From assembly GCA_002269645.1 (NCBI GenBank), contig NIVC01001781.1, positions 1 through 64,000 of the forward strand: a stretch of 64,000 bases of DNA, given 5' to 3'. The stretch is from Macrostomum lignano. Taxonomy: Eukaryota. The notes beneath the pieces were generated by a model. It saw nothing but the letters and a program-made list of their open reading frames with translations, ran no database searches and was not told where the DNA came from. The translations under genes were made by a program, and so were the position numbers. The first letter of the stretch is position 1. Each line of letters starts with the position of its first letter. This document shows, piece by piece, positions 5,176 through 59,600 of the stretch.

Positions 5176-7935
5176 TCAGGCTTGTAGGTCAGACTCTAGC
5201 GTGGCGGTCAGCGTGGTGGTCCGGCCTTGGCCCCGTCGGAGACGCTCGGTTGGCTGATGCAGCAGGGTGAGCGCCAGCGGGTTTTGCTCCCCTCTGCCAT
5301 AGCTGAGGAAGCAGTGGCCGACGAGCATTAGCCGGCGCCGCTGGAGGGTGGCACTGAGCTGAGGCACGCGGGCTCTCGCCATCAGCAGGTCCGTCGGCAG
5401 CCGCTCGGGGTAATGGATGCCAAGGGCGAACCGCAGCAGCGATCGGTAGGCAGCGTCCAGGGCTCGAGACCTCGAGTCGGTCATTGGCACTGCCTCCAGT
5501 CCGTACAGGAAGATTGGCTCTACGGCAGCGCGGAACAGGCGCATCTTCAGGTCGTCGTTGGCAGCTGAGCTGAAGACCTCCCTGAGGAGATGAGCCGCAC
5601 GCCAGGCCTGTGACCTCCGGTCAGCGATGATGGAGTCAGGGCTCATCACGAGGGAGCACAGGTACCGGAAGTCTCTGCAGACTGAAATATGACTTGCCCA
5701 TCTGGTAGGGTCAGGATTGGTGCTGCATCGGTGCCCACGTGCAGCACCGTGCGTTGATTTGGAGTCGGACTCGGGCGCTCTCCTCATAGAGTCTCGAGAG
5801 CGCTCTCTGGGCGGCAGTCGGACTGCGGCACAGCAGGGCGATGTCGTCGGCGTACGCGAGGGCGGGCAAAGGGGCAGCACCGCGGCGGGAGCTCCGGCGT
5901 GACGCCAGCAGGTAACTGTCCTCTGTGAGGCTTCGGCGCAGCACGTAGTCGACGACAAGGATGAAGAGCAGAGGGGCCAACGTGTCACCATGGAGGACTC
6001 CGGAGCTGGTGCAGAAGTCCTCAGTTGGACCATCGCTGGTTTAGACAAAGGCTTTGCTGTTGTTGTAGAGGTCCATCACTGCAGAGATAAGAGCCGGGGG
6101 GGACACGCCATAGTGCTCGAGCAGCCACGCGATCGCGCGCCGGCACACTGAGTAAAAAGCTTTGCGGAAGTCCACAAAGACAATTGACGCAGCTCTTTGG
6201 TGAGTTTTACAGGCCTCGACGACTGCTCGAAGGGCTGCAATCTGCTCTGTTGTCGAGCGGCCGGGCCTGAAGCCACTTTGGAGGCTCAGGATCATTTGTT
6301 TGAGGCCAGACAGCAGCCGATTACGCAGTATAGCATTGAGCAGCTTAGCCAGAGTGCATTCCAGAGCAACGTCGCGTTGGTTGTCCAGACTGGTGGATGC
6401 GCCCTTCTTGGGGATGGAGACGATCTTAAAGGTGCGCCAGTTGTCAGCAGCAGTAGCATCTGGGTTGCCTCCAAGCGGACAGTGCTTGTTGAGCACAGTC
6501 GTGATGTCCTGTGTCAGCTCCGGCAGCTTGAGCACCCTGGGTGGAATGCCATCTACTCCGGCGGCAGCGTCGGGGCGCATGGTCTTGAGCACTCGGTTCA
6601 CCAAGTAGGCAGTCAGCGGGCCGGAGTTGAAAGTCGAGGGCTCAGCCGGGGTAAAGTTTTCGATCGGCAGCAAAGCAGCAGAGAGCGGTGGAGCGTTGAG
6701 CTCATTGTGGTAGTGAGTGGCCAGCAGGGCTTTGCGATTGTGTATGGACTCAGCACCTACAGCGGCATTGGCCCTCTGCTTCCTGCCAGTCAGGCGGTTG
6801 ATGGCGCGCCAGGCCGCTGTGTGCCGGCAGTTGTCTGTCGCTAGTTGAATTTCAGCAACAGCCTCCTGGACAAAGGCTTCGGTCCTCCGGGCATGCGTGT
6901 CGCGTAGTTGGGCCCGGGCTGTTTCAGCCTGCTCACTGTCTTGGCCAAAGACTGCGGTTGTTCTTTGCACGTCGCGCCTAGCGATGGAGATCTCCTCGTC
7001 GGAGTCCCAGGCGGCTTTTGGCTGGTGCGGTGTTCGTTTTGGTAGGATCGAGGCAGCTTTCTCAACAGCTCTGGTGAAGGCGTCCGCCGATTCATTCAGG
7101 GCCGGAGTAGCATTTTGCAGTTTTTCAATGAACGCACTGTGCGTGTCTGGGTTTCTCAGATCTGCTCAGAGGGGGGTGCGGTGGGCCAGCCTTGAACTTT
7201 TTCCATCGGCAGTCGATGTCGCAGGCCAGCAGAGAATGGTCGGACCTCACGCATCTGGGGCGGATTTGACCACTTTGCGCAGTCGAGAACTGATGGCCGA
7301 AGGGCACAAAATCCAGTCCAGCCTGGTGGTCCGTCCATTTGGGCCGAAGAAGGTGGGCAGCTTGTTGTACCGCTGCCGCATGACACCATTGGCTGCAATC
7401 AGGTCTTGAGAGTGAATGAAAGTTGACAGGAAGTCCGAGTTGGTGTTGGTGGAGCCGCAGTTTTTCTTCACCAGGCGGCCATCAGGGGACAGTGGCGCGT
7501 TGAAGTCTCCAGCCACAAAAAGCAGGTCGCGACCAGGGACCGAGTCGATGAGCAATCCCAGGTGGTCATACATTGACTCAGTCTCGGTAGGGTCAGTAGC
7601 TGTGCGTGGGGCTGTGGGGGCGTAGACGCAGATTACATGAAGGCGCCTGTCCTTCTTGGCAAAAGAGGTAATGTCAAGGCGGTCGGTTGGGAAGCTGGCA
7701 TTCAGAAGGGCCCTTGAGGCACTAGGTGACAGCAGAAACCCGATGCCTCCAGAGCCCTGGGCTGAGGCTGGGGCGGCTCGGAACTGCCAGCCAAGGCCTG
7801 GATCAGCGCACTCTTCGGTGCTCCTGCGGTGTTCTTGGACAGCCAGAATGGAGATGTTCATGCTCTTTGCCAGCTTGGTTAGCTCGTGCAGTCTCCAGGG
7901 GGCAGTGAGCGTTCGTGCGTTGAAGGTAGCAAGTC
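5176..7935 (-). mobile_element. Decayed non-LTR retrotransposon (RTE-like), AP endonuclease + reverse transcriptase
   Basis: APE motifs LATFNARTL, ILAVQEHR, VAGDFNA, RLDWIL. RT motifs IVSIPKKG, QSGFRPGRST, FVDFRKAF, GVLHGDTLAPLLF, LAYADDIAL, FRYLCS. In-frame TAA at 6041 and several frameshifts. Confidence 0.92.
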
Positions 7936-18700: not shown

Positions 18701-21700
18701 TTCTACCAGTGTAGCTTGGGATGTGTGGGACTGCACATTGTCATATAGCAGAAAAATGCCAACATGCAGTTTCCTAGGTTGGCATTTGACTAGCTGCAAC
18801 TATAAACCAGCCAGGGATGCCATATAGCACTTAGAGTTAAGGTCTGGCCTTTCTTTAGGTAGTCAATAAAGATGACTCCTTCACAGTCCTAGAAAATTGT
18901 TACCATTGTTTTAGTGATAGCTGGTACTGCCTTGGCCTTGGTTGGGGAGGGCTCTCCAAGGGCCATCCAAACTTTGGAATGCTGTTTAGTTTCAAGGTTG
19001 TAGTGTGGTAACTAGGTTTTGTCAATGGTAACAAAATTATAATAAATAATAATCTAGTAATAAGATCACCTCTCTTTTACCTTTTTATAATTGTATTATA
19101 AGTATTTTGGTAAAAGTTTTGCACTTTTGGAAAATATTAAGTGCTAAATTGGCTATTTTGGCACCTAAAGTTTCTTTTTCAAGTGCATGAAAACTGGAGT
19201 TATCAAAAAGTAACTTATACTTTAGGTTTAGGATCTTAAAACCAAAATGTAAAACCTTGGGTAACTTGGCTTGCTACTATTGTTGGCATTGCTACTACCT
19301 CTATAACCTTAAAAGAACTATCTTGTTTTTTAAAAAGCAGTTGAGACAAGGTTTTATAGCTTTCTTAGTGGTGTTGACCTAGGCACTGACCTAGAAACAC
19401 AAGTACCACTTTTTTTCAAATTGGTTAATATTAGAAATCTTGAATTTCTTAAGTGGTGGCTCAATACTCTTGCAGTATGTCTTGTACAAATCTGCTTCTT
19501 TCTTCTTTTCCAGTGATACAATTTGGTTAGAAACTGTCAAAGAATACTTTAGAATTATAGTTTGGGCCTTTGGCCATTATTATTGGATGGTTCATTGTCC
19601 TCATCTTTTTCTTCATTATCTGCTTCATTAGCATCACTATCTGTATAACAGTTCTTTAGAACACTTAGAATTTTAGTCAATAGATATCTCCTTGTCAAGA
19701 TTCTCAAATGTAGCTTCAATATTATAAGTATCTTCAGAAAGGTATTCAATAGTTCATTCAGCAATTTTAATGGTAGCATAAGAGCCAAGCTTGACAATAA
19801 CAGCATCATGAAATCCATTTTGATCTTTAAAGTTGGATTTTTAAATGCTCCTTAAATTCCATTTTTGTAGCCTTATCAATATGACTAAGAAAACAAGAAT
19901 TTACACAAATAACTCCACTGTGTATATTTGTCTTTGGGAACTATAAAATTACATGTTTTAAACTTAAGGTTGCAAACTTGTCAAGTTTAGTAGCTTGTTT
20001 TGAACAAGAAACTCTACTATCTCTTGTCCTATTGAAAGATTCTCAAAGTGAAAAAAAAATAAAGTAATGGAGGTTCAAATTTTTTTAAGTTTACATATGT
20101 AATAAAAATTACAAATATAATAAATAAATATGTATAAAGTCTAGTAAAAAATATAAATAGCTAAAATAGGGACTTTAGTAAGGGTCCTATGCAGTTATGG
20201 ATCCAGAAAATTTTTGTGGGGGAGGGACAAGCTATGCTACTATATCAAGCACTATAACCCAATATTGGAAAATGGACCTTGCATTGTTGCAAGCCAAAAA
20301 ATATGGCCCATTTTTACCTTGGCTGAAAAATGTGGGCCTGGCCCCCTTTGCCCCCCCCCCCCCCTGGATCCACTGGTCCTTTGACTTGCCAACATGCATA
20401 GAAAACAAAAGGGAAATTTGACTTAAAGGGTGGTGGCTCATGTATGGCAAATGAATTAACCTTATGTAACTCCACCTTATAAGCTTAAGTTCACATAATA
20501 GTCCCTAATTGTCCCCTTGCTTGTTATCTCCTATTTCAGGTCCAATATCAGAGTGCATGGACATTTTTATAATTTTAACAAATATGCCATCTTTATAAGC
20601 AACTTAATCAGGATAAATATATGTACTTTTATTTACATAGCAGTTTTTATGGTACACTTTTTGTATACTAGAATTTTCACTTGAGCCATATATACACAAG
20701 AAAATGTAGTGCATTGAAAATCACAAATCTTGAAATCTTAATGATGATTACAAATTTAACCAGGGAGCCTTATTAACTCTTTTCTGGCAATGAGCATTGT
20801 CATAGTTACACTGAGAAACTGCAAGTCTATGTTGAATTCAATTTATAAAGCAACTATGTGATAGAATAATCCTACAGAAATTGACCAAACACCATTGCCA
20901 TTACTAGGCTGTTTCGCCTGCGGCATGTGCAACGGATTTCGTATTTACAACACCGAGCCGCTAAAAGAGAAAGAGCGCCAAGATTTCCCAGGGGAATCTG
21001 GCAGTGGCGGTGCAATGGGCGGCGTTCGTCTCATTGAGATGCTCTACAGGTGCAATTACGTTGGCCTGGCATTTTCTAACAATCCCAAATATCCGCCTAA
21101 CAAGGCCGTCATCTGGGATGATGTGAAGAAAAAGTTTGTCATTGAAATGGAATTTGCTAGCGAAGTGCTGGCTATTAGACTAAGAAGGGAGAAGTGAGTG
21201 AATTTTTATGTACAGATTGATCCCATTTCTAAACCTACAGATTGATCCCATCTCTAAACCTACAGATTGATCCCATCTCTGAATCTACAGATTGATCCCA
21301 TCTCTAAACCTACAGATTGATCCCATCTCTAAACCTACAGATTGATCCCATCTCTGAATCTACAGATTGATCCCATCTCTGAATCTACAGATTGATCCCA
21401 TCTCTAAACCTACAGATTGATGATGGGTCTAAACCTACAGATTGATCCCATCTCTGAATCTACAGATTGATCCCATCTCTAAACCTACAGATTGATCCCA
21501 TCTCTAAACCTACAGATTGATCCCATCTCTGAATCTACAGATTGATCCCATCTCTGAATCTACAGATTGATCCCATCTCTAAACCTACAGATTGATGATG
21601 GGTCTAAACCTACAGATTGATCCCATCTCTGAATCTACAGATTGATCCCATCTCTGAATCTACAGATTGATCCCATCTCTAAACCTACAGATTGATCCCA

Positions 21701-24700
21701 TCTCTAAACCTACAGATTGATCCCATCTCTAAACCTACAGATTGATCCCATCTCTAAACCTACAGATTGATCCCATCTCTAAACCTACAGATTGATCCCA
21801 TCTCTGAATCTACAGATTGATCCCATCTCTGAATCTACAGATTGATCCCATCTCTAAACCTACAGATTGATGATGGGTCTAAACCTACAGATTGATCCCA
21901 TCTCTGAATCTACAGATTGATCCCATCTCTAAACCTACAGATTGATCCCATCTCTAAACCTACAGATTGATGATGGGTCTAAACCTACAGATTGATCCCA
22001 TCTCTGAATCTACAGATTGATCCCATCTCTAAACCTACAGATTGATGATGGGTCTAAACCTACAGATTGATCCCATCTCTGAATCTACAGATTGATCCCA
22101 TCTCTGAATCTACAGATTGATCCCATCTCTAAACCTACAGATTGATCCCATCTCTAAACCTACAGATTGATCCCATCTCTAAACCTACAGATTGATCCCA
22201 TCTCTGAATCTACAGATTGATCCCATCTCTAAACCTACAGATTGATGATGGGTCTAAACCTACAGATTGATCCCATCTCTGAATCTACAGATTGATCCCA
22301 TCTCTGAATCTACAGATTGATCCCATCTCTAAACCTACAGATTGATGATGGGTCTAAACCTACAGATTGATCCCATTTCTGAATCTACAGATTGATCCCA
22401 TCTCTAAACCTACAGATTGATCCCATCTCTAAACCTACAGATTGATCCCATCTCTAAACCTACAGATTGATCCCATCTCTGAATCTACAGATTGATCCCA
22501 TCTCTAAACCTACAGATTGATCCCATCTCTAAACCTACAGATTGATCCCATCTCTAAACCTACAGATTGATCCCATCTCTAAACCTACAGATTGATCCCA
22601 TCTCTAAACCTACAGATTGATCCCATCTCTAAACCTACAGATTGATCCCATCTCTGAATCTACAGATTGATCCCATCTCTAAACCTACAGATTGATCCCA
22701 TCTCTAAACCTACAGATTGATCCCATCTCTGAATCTACAGATTGATCCTATCTCTAAACCTACAGATTGATTCCATCTCTAAACCTACAGATTGATCCCA
22801 TCTCTAAACCTACAGATTGATTCCATCTCTAAACCTACAGATTGATCCCATCTCTAAACCTACCGATTGATCCCATCTAAACCTACAGATTATCTACAGA
22901 GTGATCCAATCTCACTATCCTCTCACCCACAGGATCGTTATCGGTCTGCACACAGCCGTGAAAGTGTTCACATTCACCCAGCCGCCCAGCCTGTTACACG
23001 TGTTCGAATCGAGCCCGAATCCCCACGGTTTAATAGCACTGTGCCCCTCGTCTGACCGGCAACTATTAGCCTTCCCCGGGCACAGCAGTGGGTCGGTGGC
23101 CCTGGCCGATCTGGGCCAGCCAGACCGACCAAAAGGCCAATCCGCTAATCTGCTGCACGCTCACGAAGGCAGATTGGCGGCCCTATCTATGAACAGTCGC
23201 GGCACATTGTTAGCAACTGCATCTGAGAAGGGCACACTGATTCGCGTGTTTCAACTGCCTCAACAGCAGCAGCAGCAGCCGCAGTTGCTGCACGAGCTCA
23301 GACGAGGATCTCAGCCTGCCCGAGTTTATTGCGTCACATTCAGCTCCGATAGCGGGTTGCTATGCGCCGCTTCCGATCGAGGCACCGTACACGTGTTCCG
23401 ATTAGATTATAATGATCAACAGTTGAGTCAGCGGGCTAGCGGCGAGTCTCAACAGCAGCAGCATCACGCTCTGGAAGCTTCGCCAGCAACTGCTGCCGCT
23501 TCTGTAGCAAAATTCTTTAGTCAGGTTACTAGCGTAGCCAGGTTGCCAATACAGCCAGGCGTGCCGACTGTCTGCGCCTTCGGACAGGATAGCTTAGGCC
23601 GCACCTGTTCGCTTATTGGTGAGATATTTGATGTTCATTATGCTACTTGTTAGTAGGATATCGATCTAAATAATGTTAGCGCCTAATAGGCAATGACCTC
23701 CAAAAGAAGTTCTAATATTGAGTCCCCTAATTGAACATCAGGTGTTATTGAGTCCCCTAATTAAACATCAGGTGTTTATTAAATCCCCTAATTAAACATC
23801 AGATGTTATTAAGTCCCCTAATTAAACATCAGGTGTTATTAAGTCCCCTAATTAAACATCAGGTGTTTTTAAGTCCCCACAATGAAACATGATGTGCTAT
23901 TGAGTCCCCCTCTAATCGAACATCAGGTGTTATTGAGTCCCCTAATTAAACATCAGGTGTTATTGAATCCTTCAAAAAATTGCTAGCATGCCAATGTTCT
24001 TAAAAGTATCGGCGACATTGGTCAGTCCTAATGATGAGTATAAATTTGTTTTAGAGAGCCTACCTTTCATTTATTGGGCGATGAGCATTGTCATAGTTAC
24101 TCTGAAGGACTTGAGTTGTTATTGGATTTTAATGATCATTGTTCAGCCGTGCAAGATTGTACAAAAATCTTGTCTATTTGAGTACATATAATTGCTTAGG
24201 TTACTAAAACTATTTTACAGATAGAGTTCTAATGATGAGTATATTAATCTTTTCGAGAGCCTGTAGGCTTTTAGCCTTTGCATTATTTGGCGATGAACGC
24301 TGTCATAGTTACTCTGAAGACTCTTACGACTTTAAATAGTGTAGGTTGATAGATTCATTTTTGTGTATTTTGTTTATAATTTGGAGTCTAGATGATGAGT
24401 AAACATATTTTCAGGAGCCTGATTTGCTATTTTTTGGCAAAGACTATTGTCATAGTTACACTGATAGACTCCATTATATTTAGTTCTTTATAGTTATAGA
24501 CTGGCTCACTTTAAAAAGCGACATTGTCACACAACCGGCGAGAGGCATTACTGCCCATTCCGCCGACTCCCCTGATCATACGATCAGGTCCAGCCAAGCC
24601 AAGATCAGCTCTAGACTGCTAGCTCATGGAGGGGGCGTTGCTGAAATGCTGTGGCTCATGGTGGGTGCTAAGATGCTTTGATCCTAAGCTCATAGCGGAT

Positions 24701-29058: not shown

Positions 29059-29339
29059 ACGGTTAGAGGCTATCAACTCCTTCGATTTACAATTTGCGTG
29101 CCAATTTTGCTACTCGTATGTAAATGTCAATATCTCCGCTGCTAGAGATCGCAATGCTCAGAATTAAGCATCCCGTTGTTGATTTTTTACGAACAGAAAT
29201 TTTGCATGCTTTTTTTATTAGAAATTTCTTGTATTTAGTCATTCTTCGCTCAACGATTCCATAGTGCATGGCTTATATTTTAAAAGTTGAGTTATAATAA
29301 CTCCTAACAGTTTCTCTGCTAGGAGTTTGCTCAGCTGAT

Positions 29340-30662
29340 AAGAGCGACTCTTGGGATATCCTGATAAGGGTGACACTAGGGGTGTCTTGATAAGAGTGTC
29401 ACTAGGGTTGTCTTGATAAGGGTGACACTATGAGTGTCCTGATAAGAGTGACACTAGGGTGTCCTGATAAGGGTGACACTAGGGTGTCTTGATAAGGGTG
29501 ACACTAGGGTGTCCTGATAAGAGTGACACTAGGAGTGTCCTGAAGGGTGACACTATGAGTGTCCTGATAAAAGTGACACTAGTGGTTTCCTGATAAGGGT
29601 GACACTAGGAGTGTCCTGATAAGGGTGACACTATGAGTGTCCTGATAAATGTGACACTAGGAGTGTCTTGATAAGGGTGACACTAGGGTGTCTTGATAAG
29701 GGTGACACTAGGAGTGTCCTGATAAGGGTGACACTAGGATTGTCCTGATAAGGTTGACACTAGGAGTGTCCTGATAAGGGTGACACTAGGGGTGTCTTGA
29801 TAAGAGTGACACTAGGAGTGTCCTGATAAGAGTGACACTAGGAGTGTCTTGATAAGGGTGACACTAGGAGTGTCCTGATAAGAGTGACACTAGGAGTGTC
29901 CTGATAAGGGTGTCACTAGGAGTGTCTTGATAAGGGTGACACTAGGAGTGTCCTGATAAGGGTGGCACTAGGAGTGTCCTGATTAGGGTGACACTAGGGG
30001 TGTCTTGATAAGGGTGACACTAGGAGTGTCCTGATAAGGGTGACACTAGGAGTGTCCTGATAAGGGTGTCACTAGGGGTGTCCTGATAAGAGTGTCACTA
30101 GGGGTGTCCTGATAAGGGTGACACTAGGAGTGTCCTGATAAGGGTGACACTAGGAGTGTCCTGATAAGGGTGACACTAGGATTGTCCTGATAAGGGTGAC
30201 ACTAGGGGTGTCTTGATAAGAGTGACACTAGGAGTGTCCTGATAAGAGTGACACTAGGAGTGTCTTGATAAGGGTGACACTAGGAGTGTCCTGATAAGAG
30301 TGACACTAGGAGTGTCCTGATAAGGGTGTCACTAGGAGTGTCTTGATAAGGGTGACACTAGGAGTGTCCTGATAAGGGTGGCACTAGGAGTGTCCTGATT
30401 AGGGTGACACTAGGGGTGTCTTGATAAGGGTGACACTAGGAGTGTCCTGATAAGGGTGGCACTAGGAGTGTCCTGATTAGGGTGACACTAGGGGTGTCTT
30501 GATAAGGGTGACACTAGGAGTGTCCTGATAAGGGTGACACTAGGATTGTCCTGATAAGGGTGACACTAGGAGTGTCCTGATAAGGGTGACACTAGGAGTG
30601 TCCTGATAAGGATGACGCTAGTGGTTTCCTGATAAGGGTGACACTAGGGGTGTCCTGACTAG
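29340..30662. repeat. 26-bp minisatellite (~50 units)
   Basis: Unit CCTGATAAGGGTGACACTAGGAGTGT; each unit carries the inverted pair GACACT/AGTGTC. Confidence 0.98.
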
Positions 30663-31935: not shown

Positions 31936-36663
<4,728 letters not shown>

Positions 36664-46100: not shown

Positions 46101-48125
46101 ATGAATATTTTATCTCCAGTATTCGCCCTCGGAATTCTGCTGTCACTGTCAACTCCAACAGTTCGAGCTGCATCGCTGGTTAACAAAAGTTCAAGCAATG
46201 CCAACACGGTCAGCCTGTTTGAGGATACGAATCCCCCCGCTTCTGTGGCTAAAAGACCCGCCATCGTGAAACCCGTGCTGAAATTTGAGCGAGTCTGCGA
46301 TCCGCTTGTTGGCTACAGTGGATTGTACAGAAGGCACCCTCTAGTGCTGCCTTTGGCAATCAGTTTGTCCAGAAGTTCGAACGCTCCTGCAGACTATGTG
46401 GCAACCGACATCAAGCTGAGCGTTGATGAAGCTCTGAAATCCACCTTGCTTGATGGCAGTGAAAGCTCCACAGTCAAGTTGTTGGTCCAGCTGAAAAGGC
46501 GGCAGCCAGATGAGATAGGAGCAGGACAGCTGGTGTTCCTGTGCAGTGACTTCACCAGATGCCAGTAGTTGAGGGAATCGATCGAAGATGATCCAGAAGA
46601 GCTCTGGCGTTCTATCAGATTTTCTATCGAATTGAAACCCACTGTAGAGCCGTCATCGAACGTCGAATCAAAAGTTATTCGATTTGACAATCTTCGACCT
46701 GTCAATCTGCCAGAGCTGGCCTGCGAGTCCAGATCTGACTGGATTGTATTTCAGAGGCGCGTTGACGGCAATCTTTCCTTCGCTAAGAATTGGGACGCCT
46801 ACGTGAATGGGTTTGGAAATCCTGAATCCAACTACTGGATGGGTGAGTTTGCTAGTTGAAAACTCAATCAGAAGGTGCAGGAGGTGCTTCACGACGTTTC
46901 ACCCTGACACAAGTGTACACCTGGGAATGCATGCAGCAATGAAGAAAAAAACAATTAATTTAATTTCTTTAGCTCGATAAATTTTCAATATCCTGCTTTC
47001 GAGGCGAATACGTTTGCAATTAGGGGGTGTGGCCTAGTGGTTAGGGCGTCGGACTCACGACTTAAAGGTCGTGCGTTCGATTCTAGATCCATCTGGAAAA
47101 ATTTGTGCCCCTGAGCAAGACACTTAACTCTGCATTGCTTCAGTTCACCCAGCTGTAAAATGGGTGCCAGCATTAGCTGGGGTATTTGAGGCCGTGTGTG
47201 GCGACCCCCAGTCCTTGGACTGAACAGCCGTACGTAGCCTTCAGATGCGCCTCGCAATAGCTGAGGCTGAGCACATCTGGCCATTTAGGGCAGGTGTAAT
47301 CAATTACTAATTTTATTATTAGTATTATTATTATACGCGTTTTTGTCTGGGACCTTAGAGTTTGGGTGCTCTCTTTCTTAAGATAGATGTCTAGCGGTCT
47401 AAGGTTCGTACAGCTCTAATCCTGTCGTAAGCTGTTCGTACAGCTCCTTTGTTCACTGTTGGGCACACTCTCGTCATTAATCGTTTGATTAGTTGATCCG
47501 ATAGTACCGGAAGCTAGATAATTAACGTACCATAAAATATTAACTTTATATATGTTAACGTTTTATAGTAGGGGAGAGGGAGAGTGAGTGAGAAAACAAA
47601 AGTAAGGACTAATAGTAACGAGCAACGTAACAACGCTTTATTGAATTCCCTGACTGAAAAACGTCATCCTCAGGTCTTGAACGACTGTTTCAATTGACTG
47701 CCACGGGCAAGAAGAGCAGCTACCATGACACCTCCAGGTGTCGGCTGCGCATTGACCTGCGCGATTTCAATGGCAACAGCTACCGGAGCGAGTACGGCCT
47801 GTTCCAGGTGCTGGATTCCGGTCAGAACTACCGCTTAAGAGTTGGACAGAAGGTGCCAAATTCTCAGATTGATGGGTTCGCTTCGGTGCACAGCGAATCT
47901 CAGTTCAGCACCTACGAGAGGAGCAATGACAGACTGCCTGGGGACTCCTGCTCTCAGCTATACGGCTTCGGCGGCTGGTGGTACAATGCCTGCCACCACG
48001 TCAACCTCAACGGCGCCTACCTGACTAACAGAAACATCACGGACAGTCCGATCTACGCGTCCTTTCGTCGGGATGGAAAATTTGTGCCGGTCATGTTTAC
48101 CGAGATGAAGCTAAAATGCGGCTGA
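46101..48125 (+). CDS. Secreted fibrinogen-related-domain (FReD) protein, 2 exons, with in-frame TAG at 46566-46568
   Basis: Signal peptide. FReD motifs WIVFQRRVDGNLSFAKNWDAYVNGFG...NYWMG|LERLFQLT, LRIDLRDFNG, FSTYERSND, GGWWYNACHHVNLNG. Intron 46843-47673 GT-AG phase 1. Confidence 0.88.
47023..47263 (+). mobile_element. tRNA-headed SINE with CORE-like domain (family B)
   Basis: A box TGGCCTAGTGG, B box GTTCGATTC, then CCCTGAGCAAGACACTTAAC...TTCAGTTCACCCAGCTGTAAAATGGG, resembling the MIR CORE. Second copy at 56482-56720. Confidence 0.85.
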
Positions 48126-49449: not shown

Positions 49450-51519
49450 ATGATAGACCTTGCAGTTATCGTTTTAATTCTCTGCTTCGCCATGGGTCTA
49501 CTTAGTTCATTCCTGTTCACGGTGGCTCTGTACCTTTATCAGATGTCTCGCCCACCTGCCGAGACAGCAGAGACGGCGGCAACGGTTTCACAGAAGCAGC
49601 ACTGCGCTCCGGTTTCGGCCACTTCAAACGTGAAAAAAGCGAAATCAAAAGCTTTGAAGAAAACCGACATCGAAGCCGCTGCTGGCGATGGAGACGCGAT
49701 GAACGATAAACGAACGGATGAAGATGGCAGCACGACCACCACCAGCTACACCAGTTGCGAAAGATGCAGCCAAGGTCTCGTGCCTCAGCGACAGGAACAG
49801 CAGCAGGAGAAACGCAGACAGCAGCAGCAGTTCCTCAGCAGCTGGACGGAGGACACCCCAGCTGGCGGCAGCGCTGGGATTTACACCTGCGAACTGTGCG
49901 GTTCCTGCTGCGCTGGAGATAGTCGAAAGGTGAAAATTGATTTATTGATATACAGATTTTTTTGTCTGAATCAAGTTCGAACAAAATTCTGAAATTTTCG
50001 CAAAATTTTATGCATGTTATTCTGTACGGTATCTCACCTTTCATCTCAGACCTATCGACCCATGGACGCTGGAAGCATTGACGCCGAGTTGTGCATCGAC
50101 AGGTCCTCGGTTCGATTCCGGCGTTGTCGTACCGGAGTCGGAGCCTATTTCTTCAATCAGAACGGCAAAGACCAACAAGCAGCCTGCGGGAATCCCGTGT
50201 CCGCAGTGTCGGCTACATTGTCACTGCCGGCCGAGACAGGTTGCATGTACCACCTTCGTTTCTGCACCACCAATGGAGAATTGCATTCAGCCAAAATCAA
50301 TAAATGCTGCGACTGCCGATCGATACTGTGCTTCGAATTGATTAAAATATTGAAGCAATGCCCAGACGGTGCTAACAACGGCGAGACAATTCTGTTTGTC
50401 AATCGGTTGCGACAGAAGCGCAAAGAGTTCAAACGGTCTTTTGGACAAGTTTCTATCCAAGAAATCGACTCCTGGTTGGTGGCGATTTTAACAGACTCCG
50501 TTTCTAATGAAGCCACCATCGCCTATAGCGGCATGACGAGAAAGTTTGTACAGATTGCCAGACAGCCAGACAGTCAGTTGGTTCTGCAGTTGTGCCTGCA
50601 AGCCCAGCAGACCCAGTGCCTGGAGCCCTACTCCAATATTGTGCAGGACTGCGATGGTAAGACACTCTGTCCTTTACTGCCAGCTTGCAAAAAAAATTTG
50701 GAAACCGTCTACTATGTAGTACAATGTAAAGTTAAGTGTGAAGCAAAGTGTGAAACACGAAGAAAAGCACAGTGTGAAACACGAAGAAAAGCACAGTGTG
50801 AAACACGAAGAAAAGCACAGTGTGAAACATGAAGAAAAGCACAGTGTGAAACACGAAGAAAAGCACAGTGTGAAACACGAAGAAAAGCACAGTGTGAAAC
50901 ACGAAGAAAAGTACAGTGTGAAACACGAAGAAAAGCACAATGTGAAACACGAAGAAAAGCACAGTGTGAAACACGAAGAAAAGCACAATGTGAAACACGA
51001 AGAAAAGCACAGTGTGAAACACGAAGAAAAGCACAGTGTGAAACACGAAGAAAAGCACAGTGTGAAACACGAAGAAAAGCACAGTGTGAAACACGAAGAA
51101 AAGCACAGTGTGAAACACGAAGAAAAGCACAATGTGAAACACGAAGAAAAGTACAGTGTGAAACACGAAGAAAAGCACAGTGTGAAACACGAAGAAAAGC
51201 ACAATGTGAAACACGAAGAAAAGCACAGTGTGAAACACGAAGAAAAGCACAGTGTGAAACACGAAGAAAAGCACAGTAAAAAGCGCAGGTGTAAAGCTCT
51301 GCACGAATTAACACGTGAAGCAACAGTGTAAAAGCCTGCGGGTCTTATCAGACATTAATCCCATAAGCTGGTCGCCCGTTTTTAATTTCGCTCAATGCAG
51401 ATCAATCGGCGCAAGGCGATCTGGGCGTTCGGTCGCCAATTTCAGCCGAGCAGCTGCTCAAAAAGCAGCAACAGCAGCGGCAGCAGCAGCGCCACATTCG
51501 AAGAAAGCGACACCGAATG

Positions 51520-51550
<31 letters not shown>

Positions 51551-52305
51551 TGGCAGCCGCGGCAGGCAGTGACAAAAACAATTGCGAACATGAAGTCGCT
51601 TGGGACGACGGCGCCAGCGAGTGCAGCAATGTAAGCCACCTACACAACCTACCTACTAATGGCAGCTACTAAAAGAGTATTAAGAAAATAATGCAAAGCG
51701 AATACTTCATACAGTGTGCATAAATAAATAACATTAGATCTTCTAATAATCAGATAACAAAGAAAAAGAGCTTCATGCAGAGCCTATCAGTACAATTCAG
51801 CGACTTTACTTTATACAGCATGCTTTAACTCAATAATGCGACAGTCCACTCGTGGTCCAGAGTGTCCACTAGAAAGCATGTACGTAGTCCGCCTTAAGGT
51901 TGGCACTTCGTTTGCATTCGACTAGCCACATGATTCTTTCACTTCCAATTGACTTTCTTAACAACTATATTTCACCTCGAACCCAAACTGCCCTGGCAGA
52001 GCCTTCAAGCCGACACCAAATCAAGTTTAACTGGCGGCGGTCAATCCCCGCTGTCTATGGGCTCAATGCGACGCGCCGTCCGCTGGCCCATCACCCAGAT
52101 GGAGAGCCTGATGGAGACTTCGTCGTCGTCCGCGTCGTCGCCTCGAGCAGATTCGACTGGTCCGAATTTGCCAGCTGGTGACGCGCCAGGAGACGTGGCA
52201 ATTCGTCTGGAAGAAGACGCAGAGCAGCAAGGCGTGGCTCCAGATGAGAATTCAGGTGAATATGGGTTCCTTTCGTTGGGATTGAGTTGGATTAAACTGT
52301 CTTGA
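49450..52305 (+). CDS. Uncharacterised protein with N-terminal transmembrane helix, Cys-rich middle domain and polyQ; 3' end uncertain
   Basis: Exons 49450-49929, 50050-50656, 51401-51630, 52000-(52255 donor or TGA 52305) join in frame through GT-AG introns (phases 0/1/0). No family recognised. Confidence 0.75.
50745..51280. repeat. 24-bp minisatellite in intron 2 of the uncharacterised gene
   Basis: Unit GTGTGAAACACGAAGAAAAGCACA. Confidence 0.98.
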
Positions 52306-52419
52306 TGACTCTCGATTGGGATTGGTGCAGGTTCTTTGAGTTCAGCGATTTCTATTACTCGCCTTTTATTTACTTTGAGTTGGTCTCTGCAAAGCTTGAG
52401 ACAAGCGCGATTCTTTCTC

Positions 52420-52820
52420 TGGGTTGCTCCCAGGGCGATTCTCTCTGGGTCCGATGGCGATTCTCTGGGCTGGGTTGATCCGATGGCGATTCTCTCTGGG
52501 TGGGGTTAGTCCGATGGCGATTCTCTCTGGGCTGGATTGATCCGATGGCGATTCTCTCTGGGTCCGATGGCGATTCTCTCTGGGCTGGGTTGATCCGATG
52601 GCGATTCTCTCTGGGTCCGATGGCGATTCTCTCTGGGCTGGGTTGATCCGATGGCGATTCTCTCTGGGTGGGGTTGACCCTCAGGGCGATTCTCTCTGGG
52701 TGGGGTTGACCCTCAGGGCGATTCTCTCTGGGTGGGGTTGAGCCTCAGGGCGATTCTCTCTGGGCTGGGTTGATCCAAGGGCGATTCTATCTGGGTGGGG
52801 TTGGTCCGATGGCGACTCTA
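52420..52820. repeat. Variable-length (22-32 bp) minisatellite
   Basis: Core GGCGATTCTCTCTGGG with a few recurring linkers. Confidence 0.93.
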
Positions 52821-53514
52821 TTTTAATTACTCTATAAGTTTGCTATAATTCTCTTTAGCATGATGCTGCGCAGTGAATCGTTAAAAATGCAGTGGTATGG
52901 GTTTTGTACCCAACTGTTAACTGCAGTACGTTCGCCATCGGATTTCACTTGCAGCGCTGCCCGCTGACGCACCAGCTCTTCAATTACCTCAATAGCCCAC
53001 GTTCGAACGACTGAACCAATTGCGAACACGAACGGACACGAAATCTGATAAATTCTCTGTGACCTGGCAAATATTGGTAATCTTTCTACTCTGGAAACCG
53101 AGTGCAATTTATTTTCTAGTTAATGTACACGTGACAATTAGGCTTTCAAGGGTGTTGTATTAAGGCCTTTAAGACTAGGACAGGATCTAAAAAGAAGTGT
53201 AGTAATAAATTTTTATCTAGCCATGGACGTACGTGTGCTTCAAGATGTCTTCTGTACTAAAAATATTTCTGACTTCCCTAATTACCTTTAATTGGCGAAA
53301 TAGTGTGATTTTTATGGAACAAAATTTGTAATTTAATTTTTTCACCTTGTTTATGAAATGAGCAATGCCAGATTTTTTCTGACTCCGGTTAAGCATTGCC
53401 AAGGTACGAGTAGAATGTGTCGCTAGTTTCCTAAAAAAGATCTTAGGGAGCATCATTTGATCGCTTATAATTGGGTTATAATATAAATTACTAGCGAGTA
53501 AAGAGGTAAAGAGA

Positions 53515-54035
53515 TGGTGTACATTGCTAGCCAGGAAAGGGGGGAGAGGTGGTACATTGCTAGCCAGGAAAGGGGTAGAGAAGTGGTGTAGTGTACATTG
53601 CTAGCCAGGAAAGGGGTAGAGAAGTGGTGTAGTGTACATTGCTAGCCAGGAAAGGGGTAGAGAAGTGGTGTACATTGCTAGCCAGGAAAGGGATAGAGAA
53701 GTGGTGTACATTGCTAGCCAGGAAAGGGATAGAGAAGTGGTGTACATTGCTAGGCCAGGAAAGGGGCAGAGAAGTGGTGTACATTGCTAGCCAGGAAAGG
53801 GATAGAGAAGTGGTGTACATTGCTAGCCAGGAAAGGGATAGAGAAGTGGTGTACATTGCTAGCCAGGAAAGGGATAGAGAAGTGGTGTACATTGCTAGCC
53901 AGGAAAGGGATAGAGAAGTGGTGTACATTGCTAGCCAGTAAAGGGATAGAGAAGTGGTGTACATTGCTAGCCAGGAAAGGGGCAGAGAAGTTGTGTACAT
54001 TGCTAGCCAGGAAAAGAGGTGAGAGGTGGTTTACA
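53515..54035. repeat. 36-bp minisatellite
   Basis: Unit TACATTGCTAGCCAGGAAAGGGATAGAGAAGTGGTG. Confidence 0.97.
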
Positions 54036-55164
54036 TTCACAGAGATTGGCCATTCATGATTTTGAATAGTTAGAAAATCAAGATCAGACAAACATATCCA
54101 AATTTTTTAGATAGATTCGACCTAAAGCATAGGTGGCATTAAAACTATTGATTTAAAACTGTAATATTATTTTACGGTCGTTTATTAATCTCCATGGATG
54201 CTGGTGACTATACATGTACATGCAATAGAAGGAAGGGGCTTAGGAAATTTCGCTAACACAGTCATCAATCATACAATGGATGAATTGTATTGCTATCACA
54301 TTAATCCAACGAATAATTACATGTAATATGAACTATTCTATAGTGTGAGCGTTAGAAGACCAGATATTGTCTAAAAACGGCATAAAATGGTCGCAAATCT
54401 TTTTTTTTAATTTTTCGACCTTCTTTTTAAGAACAAACCAGCTAGCCAAGCTATTTTCGCTGGTGAATAAGTTATTTTTTCCACTTACGTGTACAGTATT
54501 TTGTTATATTCTGTAAACCAACAACAAGCAACTAGACAACAGATAGCTAAATAACAAACAAGATAAGATAACTGCAATTATCAGAAAGCTACACGTATAC
54601 CTAAACTATCTAAATGTTATTAATGCTATAAAAGTACATTTTATTTTCACTACTGCAATAATCTATTTGGGCACTATACATGTATAACGATGTAACGTAC
54701 CTGCCCGTGTACTGAAGGCATTCGTAAAACAGTAGATAATAAAAGCAGTGATATCTCTTGGTGCGCATTTATAACTACTATCACACAGCAACTATTTTTC
54801 GTTCCAATCCCTGCTAGAAAAGGATGAAAATTTATTTTGCTTTTTGCGTTTCTCTTAATCTTTGGAATCGGATTTGCATTGGCACAATTAAAGCTACATA
54901 TAGATCAGTAGGCAGATATAAGCGTAACGTCTACAATTACCATTGGTTACTATTAATATTGACTCTAGTTTACATTTTCCCATAGGCGTAGGAACGTGGG
55001 ACAGTGGGGCCAATTTAAAAAGTGGGGGGGGCAGCAATGGTATCCAGCCCCTCCACATTTTAAGTACAAAATGTAGACTTTTTGCTTATTTTTTACTCTT
55101 ATTTTTTTGCTGCTTTGCATGAATGCATTTTGCTGCAGGGCGACAAAAAAAGCGCCTGAAGCGC

Positions 55165-56102
55165 TAATGCGTGCCTGCGGCGCTCAAATGAGTGCCTGCG
55201 GCGCTAAAATGAGTGCCTGCGGCGCTCAAATGAGTGCCTGCGGCGCTAAAATGCGTGCCTGCGGCGCTCAAATGAGTGTCTGCGGCGCCAAAATGAGTGC
55301 CTGCGGCGCTAAAATGCGTGCCTGCGGCGCTCAAATGAGTGCCTGCGGCGCTAAAATGCGTGCCTGCGGCGCCAAAATGAGTGCCTGCGGCGCTAAAATG
55401 CGTGCCTGCGGCGCTCAAATGAGTGCCTGCGGCGCTAAAATGCGTGCCTGCGGCGCTCAAATGAGTGTCTGCGGCGCCAAAATGAGTGCCTGCGGCGCTA
55501 AAATGCGTGCCTGCGGCGCTCAAATGAGTGCCTGCGGCGCTAAAATGCGTGCCTGCGGCGCCAAAATGAGTGCCTGCGGCGCTAAAATGAGTGCCTGCGG
55601 CGCCAAAATGAGTGCCTGCGGCGCCAAAATGAGTGCCTGCGGCGCTAAAATGAGTGCCTGCGGCGCTAAAATGAGTTCCTGCGGCGCCAAAATGAGTGCC
55701 TGCGGCGCCAAAATGAGTGCCTGCGGCGCCAAAATGAGTGCCTGCGGCGCTAAAATGAGTTCCTGCGGCGCCAAAATGAGTGCCTGCGGCGCTAAAATGC
55801 GTGCCTGCGGCGCCAAAATGAGTGCCTGCAGCGCTAAAATGGGTGCCTGCGGCGCTAAAATGAGTTCCTGCGGCGCCAAAATGAGTGCCTGCGGCGCTAA
55901 AATGAGTTCCTGCGGCGCCAAAATGAGTTCCTGCGGCGCCAAAATGAGTGCCTGCGGCGCTAAAATGAGTTCCTGCGGCGCCAAAATGAGTTCCTGCGGC
56001 GCCAAAATGAGTTCCTGCGGCGCCAAAATGAGTGCCTGCGGCGCTAAAATGAGTGCCTGCGGCGCCAAAATGAGTGCTTGCGGCGCTAAAATGAGTGCCT
56101 GC
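55165..56102. repeat. 21-bp minisatellite (~44 units)
   Basis: Unit GCGGCGCTAAAATGAGTGCCT. Confidence 0.98.
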
Positions 56103-56481
56103 AATCCAATGCCAGTACTTGATACATGTAAGCAGTCTGCATAATGGACTGCTGATGACAGAAGAGCGAGAATATAATGTCCGTCAGTCAAGCTAATAAA
56201 TAAATACGACATTTTATATAAGGGTGGATTTTCGTAGATTTTCGATTTGGCTTGCTTGCACCCTGAAGCGAGAGCGCCAGCGAAAGAAGAAATAAAAAAG
56301 CCGATGAAACACCCAGTTCGCGCCTGTCCTCGCCGTTAGGGTGGCTGCAGCGTCAGCAGCAGCACCTCTTGCTCTGAATGTGAGCAGTACGACTCGGCGC
56401 GGATGATGCGGCCCATGTCATCAGGCCAGTGGCGCGTCGGTGACTCCAGTTGGATCAGATGTGCAACCGACAGCTCAGCCG

Positions 56482-56720
56482 CAGCTATTGCGCGGCGCAT
56501 CTGAAGGCTGCGTACGGCTGTTCAGTCCAAGGGCTGGAGTGTCGCAACACACCCTCAATTACCCCAGCTAATGCTGGCACCCATTTTACAGCTGGGGTGA
56601 ACTGAAGCAATGCAGAGTTAAGTGTCTTGCTCAGGGGCACAAATTGTTCCAGTGGGATCGGGATCGAACCCCCGACCTTCAAGTCGTGAGTCTGACGCTC
56701 TAACCACTTAGCTACAACCC
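56482..56720 (-). mobile_element. tRNA-headed CORE-like SINE (family B), second copy
   Basis: Reverse complement of 47023-47263 (CCCATTTTACAGCTGGG, TTAAGTGTCTTGCTCAGGGGCACAAAT). Confidence 0.85.
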
Positions 56721-57526
56721 ACTCGGCTACATGTGGAACAAGGCTTACTGTTTTAGGGAGTCCGTTAAATTTTTTTAAAACAAACTGAAAGCTATAGCAT
56801 TAGTAAAAAGCATTTCCCGGCAGGCTAAACCTTTACGTTCGATCTGGGCTAGGCTCAACTACCCAGCAGGGAGGTGCGTGACGGACTCATACATAGGATG
56901 CTTATTGTAATTGTGAACACAGTTGTGATTCACGCTCCTAATTTGAATGGATTGTGACGAATATCTGGTCCGATAGTTCGCGTGCAGACGGGCTGCTATT
57001 CAAGTAGTGATTAAAAACACAGTAGTGGAGACCGATAACTGACGGTGCCGATTATCGATTACGGATTATGTATATTTGTAGGTTACAGACACGAACGGTA
57101 CATGTAGTGGTAAATAGCTTATGCTAAACAGGTACTTGGTAACGAACAGCTGCAGTGTCGATGGAACGGCTGCGAAGATGACCTTAGTGGGAAGCACTAC
57201 TTAATCGAGAGCAATTTTGCACTACTGTTTATCAATGTTTACGGTCTACGGAAATTAAATTGCTGGCGATAGGAACAGCAGCCGACTCCTCGACCAGTCT
57301 TCTCCGAAGCCACAGAATTCAAAATGTTAAATATAACTATTTAACTTCAGTAAAACAAAACATTGTTTACTATTGTCAATAAACATAGAAATGAAACCAA
57401 TCGATATAAATAAAATACATATTAAATATTTTAGTAGATATTAATCGACGAATTGGGAGAGTAAAAGAACCGCCAACGTCACATGATAGAGCATATTTCA
57501 GTCTATAAAACTCGCGTGTACTACCA

Positions 57527-58456
57527 GGGTGTTGAGTTTATAAATGCAGGAACGAGTCTTGTCTCTATCGGTTTTTGTCTCGCATAGAGACGCCTAACCG
57601 CAGTCACTTCTGTGAAACTTGTCTCTGCCTGGCTGAAAGCTTGTAATGAGTGAGTAGGCTGGGTTGGAGGGTAATAGTGGATCGGGAGGGGCTGTGGGTA
57701 GCTGTATAGGAAGGCAGGCCTATACCTGTACCAAGGTGCTCTGACGGTATCCCTCAGGCGCCCTCTGAGCGTACAGCCAGCGACCCTATTAAAGCTGGAG
57801 TGTGCCAGAACCAGGACTGAGTCTGAGCAGGACGAGACCGTTTGCACGGTCACAATAGAAATGGCGGGTTGGCGAAGCAAAGGGTGAAACAGTCCCGGCG
57901 ATTAGCCCTCCTGCCGCTTCAAAGATAAGAGACTGTCTGTTGGCAAGAGTACCCGGGGTTTAGTTGGGGGGGAGGCTCCTTCGGGTTGCCACGGCCGTGG
58001 GGAGCGGTCAAATGACCGGCATTGGCTTAACTAACCCAGGAGTAGGCACGGGCTTCCCTGAATGGTTCACTCAACCCCCTCTGGCCCCGGGGAGGTTTTT
58101 GATTTGTACCCGGGGGTGGTGGGCGATCGGCCCCAGCATGGTTGCCACGGCTCTAGGCCTTCGGGCCATCTCTAATAGGCTTTGGGGGCCTTCTAACCTG
58201 GTTTTTTGGGCACGGGCTTCCTGACTGGTTCGTCGAACCGCTGTCACTATCCCCCGGGGAGGTTTGGTTTTTTGATACTGCCCTGTACAGTCCTCTAGTC
58301 TAATTTGGCTTTTAGTGTACATGAGTACACTCCCAATCTGGAATCTAAATTATCTCTAGTGGCGTAAGAGCCTTTTTACTTAGGCTGAGGCGCCGGAAGT
58401 ACTTATCATAGTCATAGTCATAGTGGGTGTTGAGTTTATAAATGCAGGAACGAGTC
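57527..58456 (+). other. Direct-repeat-bounded, non-coding, hairpin-rich element of unknown class
   Basis: Identical 32-mer GGGTGTTGAGTTTATAAATGCAGGAACGAGTC at 57527-57558 and 58425-58456. (CATAGT)3 immediately before the right copy. Internal tandem domain 57949-58278. Confidence 0.8.
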
Positions 58457-58895
58457 GTAAATAGGACAGGAACCTTTGTTTAATTGTTTCGTAGAAAACG
58501 TTCTGAAGGCTGGACGCTACGAAGATTCCGAACTTTTTTACGGCACGAAATTGTCTTTTTGAAAGCAGATCCAAAACTGATTTTTAGTTTAACGTGTCTG
58601 TTTTATTGTTCGATTGTTTTCGTACAGAATTTTTGAAAAGTAATTGTGATCAATGCATGCGTTTTATCTAAAAATATGAAAAACATAAAAATGACGCAAT
58701 TCTCTAAGCTTTTTAAGACACGAAGTTTCCCGTTCTACTACTTTATAGTAGTGAGGTCTCAGAATTCTCAAGAACTTCATTGGCTGTGGGCTGCTGTCTG
58801 TATAAATGCAAGCGCACCGAACTGGATAGACTAATTTAGCTTAAACTTTTAGCAAAACCACTGGTTGACAACCAGGCCATTCTTATAAACGATCC

Positions 58896-59600
58896 ATGAC
58901 GCTACCAAAGCAGCTGCTCGAGCTGACCCTGGTTGCGGGGCTGGCAGCAGCCCTCGCCTCTGGCGCCTGCATCGCTCCGTTTATTGACAGGCTGGGCAGC
59001 TGCGTCTTCATCGGCAGCACCCCATCCAGCTGGTGCGACGCCGCCAGACTGTGCCTGGACATCGGCGGAGAACTGGCAATGGACCTGACTGCCATCAGAG
59101 CTGTCAATCACTGGGTTGATTATTACTTCATCGGAGTGACGGACCTCCTGGCTGAGGCGGGCACGTCTCGCAGCGGCTGGAGATTCGCCAACGGCTCGCT
59201 GTTCCCGACTTTGGATGGCAGCGACTGGATGTCCGGCATGCCGAACCACCATTCAGCAGATGATGACTTTGCAGCGGCCAGCATTGCAGGCCTGCGAGAC
59301 CAACCAGGGTCTGCAAGTAGACAGTTCGTTTGCCAGCCGATTGCCACGCCGAACAGCAAGTACCTGGAGCGAGCGGAGTTCCTGAGGCTGGGCAACATCA
59401 GTCCTGTCTACTGCTACACTGACGCCTCAGTGAGCTCGAAGTTTCGCTGTCTGAGGCTCTGTGTGCAGCGCTGGCAGTGCCGGGCCGTCCTGTTCAACCG
59501 GGCCAACGGCGCCTGCCGCATGCTGGACTTCGCTGACTCGAGCGTCGGCGACGCCATCGAGACCGACCCAAACTGGGTTAAGTTCGTCAAAGTGTACTGA
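58896..59600 (+). CDS. Single-exon secreted C-type lectin + PAN/apple domain protein, 234 aa
   Basis: Signal peptide. CTLD pattern SWCDAARLCLDIGGELA...YFIGVTD...GWRFANG...WMSGMPN...FVC. PAN pattern C.RLC.....CRAVLFNRANGAC. Confidence 0.88.
   Translation: MTLPKQLLELTLVAGLAAALASGACIAPFIDRLGSCVFIGSTPSSWCDAARLCLDIGGELAMDLTAIRAVNHWVDYYFIGVTDLLAEAGTSRSGWRFANGSLFPTLDGSDWMSGMPNHHSADDDFAAASIAGLRDQPGSASRQFVCQPIATPNSKYLERAEFLRLGNISPVYCYTDASVSSKFRCLRLCVQRWQCRAVLFNRANGACRMLDFADSSVGDAIETDPNWVKFVKVY

Follow-up and report, generated by a model that had tools for sequence, protein, structure and literature searches.

Two tandem units with invariant boxes lie within an apparent 866-bp retroposon insertion in Macrostomum lignano

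Macrostomum lignano is a free-living flatworm that serves as a model for regeneration; little has been described of its repeats. In the first 64 kb of contig NIVC01001781.1 (assembly GCA_002269645.1), which is nuclear DNA of this species, two adjacent units of about 160 nt share a series of identical motifs. The whole of this 64,000-nt stretch is called the window here. Its coding density is low, and minisatellites and transposon fragments are present. The NCBI annotation places no gene between 52995 and 58125, and none is called at this locus. What are these two units, on which kind of molecule are their motifs held fixed, and what carries them? An initial annotation took them for a duplicated RNA domain under selection for structure. 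Our analysis finds that the feature is real, non-random and unclassified and that its setting is of an ordinary kind; with a single locus and two sequences, it is a lead rather than a result. The explanation we prefer, with about an even chance of being right, is that the 330-nt region forms the central part of a non-autonomous non-LTR retroposon of 866 bp, which carries two hairpin modules with protein-read boxes.

Shared blocks and the segment around them

All the motifs that the initial annotation listed as common to both units are found at the positions it gave. The best collinear chain that exact blocks of 6 nt or longer form between unit A and unit B amounts to 10 + 12 + 6 + 13 + 6 + 14 = 61 nt. 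Its six blocks are, in order, GTACCCGGGG, GGTTGCCACGGC, CTAACC, GGCACGGGCTTCC, TGGTTC and CCCCGGGGAGGTTT. Dinucleotide-shuffled sequences give a chain of 26 ± 6 nt, with a maximum of 49 in 2000 shuffles. When the units are aligned on the blocks, 83 of 175 columns are identical, and at least four runs of at least ten identical columns were obtained in none of 100,000 permutations of the match vector. Between the blocks the identity is 23% (22 of 94 columns), which is the random level and bears out the earlier remark that the intervening sequence is largely different. For the three long variable segments, shuffled sequence aligns just as well (P = 0.16, 0.35 and 0.55). Because six blocks are completely identical amid identity at the random level, a constraint on something in the units has good support.

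This constraint does not act at the level of protein. The offsets of the blocks from unit A to unit B are 157, 156, 162, 164, 163 and 167 nt; they differ modulo 3, so the reading frame is lost between the units. A protein-coding repeat was rejected on this frame shift and for want of protein relatives. ORFs over the element have no relative among 5.8 billion proteins, a concatenate of the translations of its four long ORFs gives no protein match, and no record was found for the single-exon ORFs nearby. Both units open with GTACCCGGGG and close with CCCCGGGGAGG, which is followed by a T run.

The earlier reading left out the retroposon-like surroundings of the units, which sit within what looks like a recently inserted 866-base retroposon (Table 1). 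The 32-bp direct repeat at its two ends is without mismatch, and only these two copies exist in the window and a further 97 kb of M. lignano DNA. On either side the similarity breaks off abruptly after 32 bp, and the flanks beyond it are unrelated. Such a duplication of the target at both ends is a property of non-LTR retroposons, as is a 3' tail of poly(A) or of short tandem repeats on the sense strand. The tail (TCATAG)3T abuts the right repeat directly; it is found at one end only and is the sole such array in the window. The GC content is 54% in the segment and 36–40% in its AT-rich flanks. Together with the lack of an annotated gene, the direct repeat, the tail and the jump in GC are the signs that target-primed reverse transcription typically leaves, here of a non-coding RNA of + sense. 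The + strand is taken as the RNA-sense strand on account of the tail, which agrees with the greater absolute stability of + strand folds. Inside the segment, a long-range helix closes the 5' domain in the minimum free energy (MFE) fold, and this domain contains no unit-like match. T5–6 runs are found in the sense orientation at about 57571, 58096, 58197, 58264 and 58385.

Table 1. Features of the segment and predicted helices of its two units
Feature	Position	Strand	Description
Left direct repeat	57527–57558		exact 32 bp GGGTGTTGAGTTTATAAATGCAGGAACGAGTC; putative target-site duplication; holds TATAAA box
Inserted segment	57559–58424	+	866 bp; putative non-autonomous non-LTR retroposon
5' domain	57559–57948	+	390 nt; sequence unrelated to units; MFE z = -2.4
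Unit A	57949–58105	+	157 nt; predicted long hairpin; terminates in GGTTTTTGATTT
Unit A basal stem	57952–57959 with 58084–58091	+	predicted
Unit A middle helices	57962–57974 with 58070–58080	+	predicted
Unit A box-box helix	57984–57996 with 58045–58057	+	predicted
Unit B	58106–58278	+	173 nt; architecture as unit A; terminates in GGTTTGGTTTTTTGATAC
Unit B basal stem	58109–58116 with 58251–58258	+	predicted
Unit B middle helices	58119–58130 with 58233–58247	+	predicted
Unit B box-box helix	58140–58152 with 58209–58221	+	predicted
3' region	58279–58405	+	42% GC; only local hairpins; z = -1.4
Microsatellite tail	58406–58424	+	(TCATAG)3 T; 3' end of segment
Right direct repeat	58425–58456		second copy of 32-bp repeat

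The left copy of the repeat places TATAAA about 20 nt upstream of the start of the segment. The decamer TATAAATGCA, a part of the 32-mer, recurs at 58437 and 58801 and nowhere else in the 160 kb of M. lignano DNA examined. The occurrence at 58801 lies 95 nt upstream of an ORF at 58896–59600 (+). This ORF is unannotated; its 234-aa product begins like a signal peptide and has a PAN domain (E = 4e-5), and the protein collections contain no relative and no exact record of it. Since TATAAATGCA recurs upstream of this ORF, the element appears to have inserted into a promoter, some 10 nt upstream of the presumed start site, and to have duplicated the TATA box of that promoter. An insertion between TATA box and presumed start, upstream of the PAN-domain ORF, may have rewired that promoter. 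Alternatively, and against such an insertion, the TATA box in the repeat could be the promoter of the element itself, with the locus a resident RNA gene.

A predicted hairpin common to both units

The two units were aligned on the six blocks, and the gaps in the variable segments were optimised for the RNAalifold energy. The predicted result is one long hairpin per unit. Its consensus contains 40 pairs that are standard in both units with none broken; 21 are unchanged, 8 have one-sided changes and 11 have two-sided changes. The basal stem consists of CCCGGGG/CCCCGGG and one covarying pair. The pairing of these two motifs, already proposed in the initial annotation, has a probability of about 1 in both units. 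Above it, two short helices are formed in the middle by the first and fifth variable segments; their sequence differs between A and B and the pairing is retained. The box-box helix follows, with GG/CC, a UU/UU internal loop, GCC/GGC, a bulged A, CG/CG, a bulged A on the other strand and GC/GC from base to apex. In this helix GGTTGCCACGGC pairs with GGCACGGGCTTCC with a probability of 0.5 in unit A and 0.9–1.0 in unit B, as calculated from partition functions run independently for each unit. The apex is variable and poorly shared by the units, and contains CUAACC.

The structure is derived from the same two sequences on which it is judged, which makes built-in controls flattering. We therefore used controls with the variable segments shuffled in place, each of which went through the complete alignment and folding again. 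For the real units the energy of the consensus is -51.7 kcal/mol versus -37.6 ± 3.7 in the controls, of which 1 in 140 is as low, and the structure conservation index (SCI) is 0.71 versus 0.59 ± 0.05. These values lend modest support to an RNA fold common to both units. With two sequences only, at least 11 two-sided changes are also obtained in 27 of 80 re-derived controls, and covariation as such is not significant. The MFE z-scores of the single sequences are weak and alike on both strands (A -1.5 and B -2.3 on the + strand, -1.6 and -2.1 on the - strand). The absolute stability is greater on the + strand by 11–17 kcal/mol.

The selection on RNA structure that the initial annotation proposed is thus upheld in part: a shared fold has modest support, but this fold is a long, rod-like hairpin and not a multi-hairpin pseudoknot. 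The pseudoknot of GGCTTCC with GGAGGTT is possible on paper; it would use invariant bases only, with three G-U pairs, and it competes with the box-box helix, in which the CC of GGCTTCC has a better-supported partner in the GG of GGTTGCC. The hairpins that had been considered equivalent, CGGTC-AAAT-GACCG (P = 0.09) and GGCC-TTCG-GGCC (P = 0.38), are no better than the best hairpins of shuffled segments. GGTT-N5-AACC, listed among the same hairpins, shows no covariation, since both of its strands are invariant in both units. A C(UUCG)G loop is indeed present once in each unit on the + strand; the two positions are non-equivalent, one before and one after GGTTGCCACGGC. CTTCGG is locally enriched, with 2 of its 10 occurrences on the + strand of the 64-kb window falling in the units.

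The boxes are paired but do not covary. Invariant rather than covarying partners suggest that the sequence itself is recognised, and the simplest reader would be a protein that binds the irregular helix.

Relatives and rival explanations

Relatives of the units were searched for at several levels. At gathering thresholds, Rfam matches nothing in the whole window except a tRNA-like region in a SINE, and a cmscan of 57000–59000 at E <= 10 gives nothing meaningful. The Rfam search that the initial annotation had proposed thus matches the units to no known family. For a second copy, we used blastn, nhmmer, motif chains and covariance model R1, which was built on the hairpin model. The DNA searched was the window and the further 97 kb, which comprises four contigs, namely a homeologous contig and three paralogous fibrinogen-related loci. 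In these 160 kb only the units themselves were recovered. Exact two-motif and single-motif patterns have no match in IMG/VR viral contigs or JGI metagenomes. An exact-motif scan of GTDB gives only one match, of 23 nt, to a Desulfobacter MAG in which none of the other motifs lies close by; this match was rejected as a homologue, the surrounding sequence being unrelated and the match being at about chance expectation. In the literature, the motif string meets only an unrelated primer-like match.

Starting from the blocks, the direct repeat, the tail, the contrast in composition and the predicted pairing, we infer retrotransposition, RNA as the selected molecule and a protein-binding role. In the retroposon reading, an RNA would have been copied into the M. 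lignano genome in + orientation by target-primed reverse transcription, just downstream of a TATA box. The insertion would have duplicated 32 bp of the target and left a (TCATAG)n tail. The RNA would contain two tandem, anciently diverged modules of about 160 nt, each a long imperfect hairpin closed by the invariant basal stem CCCGGGG/CCCCGGG. Further up, the invariant internal helix GGUUGCCACGGC / GGCACGGGCUUCC would present its UU/UU internal loop and one bulged A per strand. Between the invariant helices lie, in this model, helices that diverge in sequence and keep their pairing, and the apex would be variable. The invariant boxes would most likely be bound sequence-specifically by a protein, for which the best candidate may come from the mobilising LINE (its reverse transcriptase or RNP) or be a factor that stabilises or exports RNA. 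Several findings count against a retroposon. There is one copy in 160 kb of M. lignano DNA, the segment has no Pol III-type head, and several T5–6 runs lie in the sense orientation. At 32 bp, the target duplication exceeds what is usual in most LINE clades. A partner LINE that shares the 3' end is not seen; in this very small sample of DNA, the only reverse transcriptase fragment of the window (5176–6970, -) shares nothing with the segment.

Several known systems resemble the segment in part. Microsatellite-tailed retroposons mobilised by LINEs, such as the stringent-type UnaSINE1/UnaL2 and the CR1- and L2-dependent SINEs, are likewise short and non-coding, have a target-site duplication, end in a short tandem repeat and not in poly(A), and carry a structured region upstream of the tail. 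The segment differs from them in the absence of a tRNA, 5S or 7SL head and of Pol III boxes, in its internal T runs, in the length of its duplication and in that no partner LINE or second copy was found. Membership in the SINEs would call for a head derived from tRNA, 5S or 7SL with A/B boxes and for a lack of internal T4+ terminators; 57000–59000 contains no tRNA, 5S or SRP match, and the T5–6 runs listed above are present. Dimeric Alu, with two tandem 7SL-derived monomers, is similar in its two diverged tandem modules of about 130–170 nt, each with its own terminal helix and with protein binding, the latter inferred for the units here. Unlike Alu, the segment has no similarity to SRP RNA in Rfam, its units lie between a 5' domain of 390 nt and a 3' domain of 146 nt, and they are far more diverged outside the boxes. 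Adenovirus VA RNA I/II and Epstein-Barr EBER1/2 offer an analogy only: they too are two adjacent RNAs of about 160–170 nt with a terminal stem, a conserved centre, a variable apex and a 3' U run. The segment differs from these in having no Rfam match and no A/B box promoter, and in being an insertion in a flatworm chromosome with no viral genes nearby. The Sm-alpha hammerhead SINE of Schistosoma and twister copies are also flatworm repeats with a conserved structured RNA core and variable helices, but none of their catalytic cores is present here.

The contrast between boxes and spacers may reflect either an old separation of the modules with the boxes held fixed, or assembly from two diverged members of a family, as in dimeric Alu. 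Both origins predict more relatives in Macrostomum genomes. A more specific proposal, which we regard as rather improbable, is that the units represent an undescribed family of structured RNAs of about 160 nt, defined by four invariant boxes whose pairing would make up two conserved helices of a long hairpin. They might then be an element for recruitment of reverse transcriptase or for packaging in a new flatworm retroposon lineage, or a catalytic or protein-sequestering small RNA captured twice in one element. Such a family, if real, would provide a well-defined RNA module of boxes and helices in a model of regeneration, and a candidate handle on the means by which a flatworm LINE picks out the RNAs that it mobilises.

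The locus could instead be a resident non-coding RNA locus, which is unlikely in our estimate. It would produce a TATA-driven Pol II transcript of about 850 nt with two structured domains, or consist of two tandem small-RNA genes of about 150–165 nt, and the 32-bp repeat would be a duplicated piece of promoter. The TATAAA 20 nt upstream would fit such a promoter, as would TATAAATGCA, whose only recurrences in 160 kb are at 58437 and 58801. However, the repeat ends sharply at 32 bp in the manner of a target duplication, and both the microsatellite tail and the jump in composition are left unexplained. Tandem small-RNA genes would agree with the closing stem and the following T5–6 run of each unit, which is Pol III-like, but there is no convincing A or B box; TGGTTC is half a B box, and TGGTTC plus AACC does not fit GGTTCGANNCC. 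The extreme contrast between box and non-box sequence resembles small-RNA gene families, yet no snRNA, snoRNA, SRP, vault, Y, 7SK, MRP or telomerase RNA is matched in Rfam. For a telomerase RNA, which was set aside, the template would amount to at most 7 nt, with CCUAACC close to the 5' end and CUAACC(C) within the units as candidates. A constraint on DNA, or no constraint at all, is quite improbable: the units would be nested inverted repeats that serve as protein-binding sites or as hairpins in single-stranded DNA, internal monomers of a transposon that resemble a satellite, or patches homogenised by gene conversion. The boxes are pairwise reverse-complementary (CCCGGGG with CCCCGGG, GCCACGGC with GGCACGGGC) and so form inverted repeats in DNA too, the MFE z-scores are equal on both strands, and about 160 bp is a typical length of a satellite monomer. 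But only two monomers exist, and the helices outside the boxes use G-U pairs, whose counterparts on the opposite strand are A-C mismatches; the + strand is the more stable by the 11–17 kcal/mol given above. Conversion tracts of 6–14 nt that alternate six times with saturated divergence are implausible.

Highly improbable, finally, is a new class of catalytic or mechanically special RNA in each unit, for instance a ribozyme that cleaves itself, an RNA that resists exonuclease or an element like an IRES. Invariant boxes within variable helices would suit this, ribozymes in flatworm repeats are commonly tandem, and the conserved CUGA and CUAACC are predicted to be unpaired or at junctions. Nevertheless, no ribozyme, IRES or exonuclease-resistant RNA (xrRNA) family is matched at E <= 10. 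Hammerhead, twister, twister-sister, pistol, hatchet, HDV-like, hairpin and Varkud ribozymes are all absent from 57000–59000 at that threshold; the initial annotation likewise stated that the hammerhead, HDV-like, twister and pistol consensus do not fit. The Rfam xrRNA, IRES and VA/EBER RNA families find no member here. The ribozyme, IRES or nuclease-resistant RNA that the initial annotation had considered gains no support, as no Rfam family gives a meaningful alignment at E = 0.5. The motif CUGA(A/C)UGG lacks G8-A9 of the hammerhead core. An HDV-like fold is opposed by the order of the helices, which allows no J4/2 region because the two 3' strands are contiguous, and the pseudoknot depends solely on invariant G-U-rich pairing. 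A circular or rolling-circle origin, with an 898-nt unit and 32-nt terminal redundancy, was rejected as well: no longer ORF runs across the junction, and the circular fold is branched with 64% of it paired and is not rod-like.

Other features of the window

The reverse transcriptase fragment at 5176–6970 (-) consists of two adjoining ORFs, the second of which has a reverse-transcriptase domain (RVT_1, E = 1e-11). It is a LINE or retroelement fragment whose sequence is unrelated to the 866-bp element. A tRNA-derived SINE is present in two copies, at 47024–47290 (+) and 56480–56730 (-), which are about 90% alike over about 250 nt. One copy lies inside an intron of a fibrinogen-related gene, and the other gives the only Rfam match of the window (tRNA, 56653–56721, 29.1 bits), which ARAGORN does not call. 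The fibrinogen-related gene spans 46101–48125 (+), and its NCBI product (P0121) has only 151 aa and starts from 46839. The UniRef model of the gene (P0271) has 356 aa, starts from 46122 and skips 102 nt with an in-frame TAG at 46566. As the UniRef model extends from 46122, the NCBI model is probably truncated. The NCBI protein (46839–48125) is carried by this contig only, and its 90% cluster has no member with a recorded contig.

Six minisatellite arrays are found at 21086–22900, 29335–30660, 50700–51330, 52300–52800, 53560–54100 and 55019–56200. The periods of the three arrays measured are 25, 26 and 21 nt. Several of the arrays lie within introns or annotated genes and give rise to long spurious ORFs. 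An annotated gene of 537 aa at 49450–52995 (+) has no Pfam match, crosses two minisatellites and has a very short last exon; this gene model looks unreliable. Furthermore, an inverted repeat of about 280 nt pairs 2548–2894 with 35478–35762 and is 85–97% complementary in many registers shifted by 4 nt, which indicates one tetranucleotide-based array in opposite orientations 32 kb apart.

The ORF at 22901–23653 has 99% identity to a WIPI3-like protein of M. lignano; contig NIVC01001781.1, which codes for that protein, matches the window with 100% identity over the same positions. The homeologous contig NIVC01004197.1 is collinear with positions 12449–38533 of the window at 92–97% identity; it terminates some 5 kb ahead of the position that corresponds to the insertion site. 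Its WIPI3-like protein is identical to that of the window, its eIF2B-epsilon-like protein has the same length, and an additional DUF1647 gene lies within its WIPI3 intron. This homeology fits the hidden polyploidy known for M. lignano.
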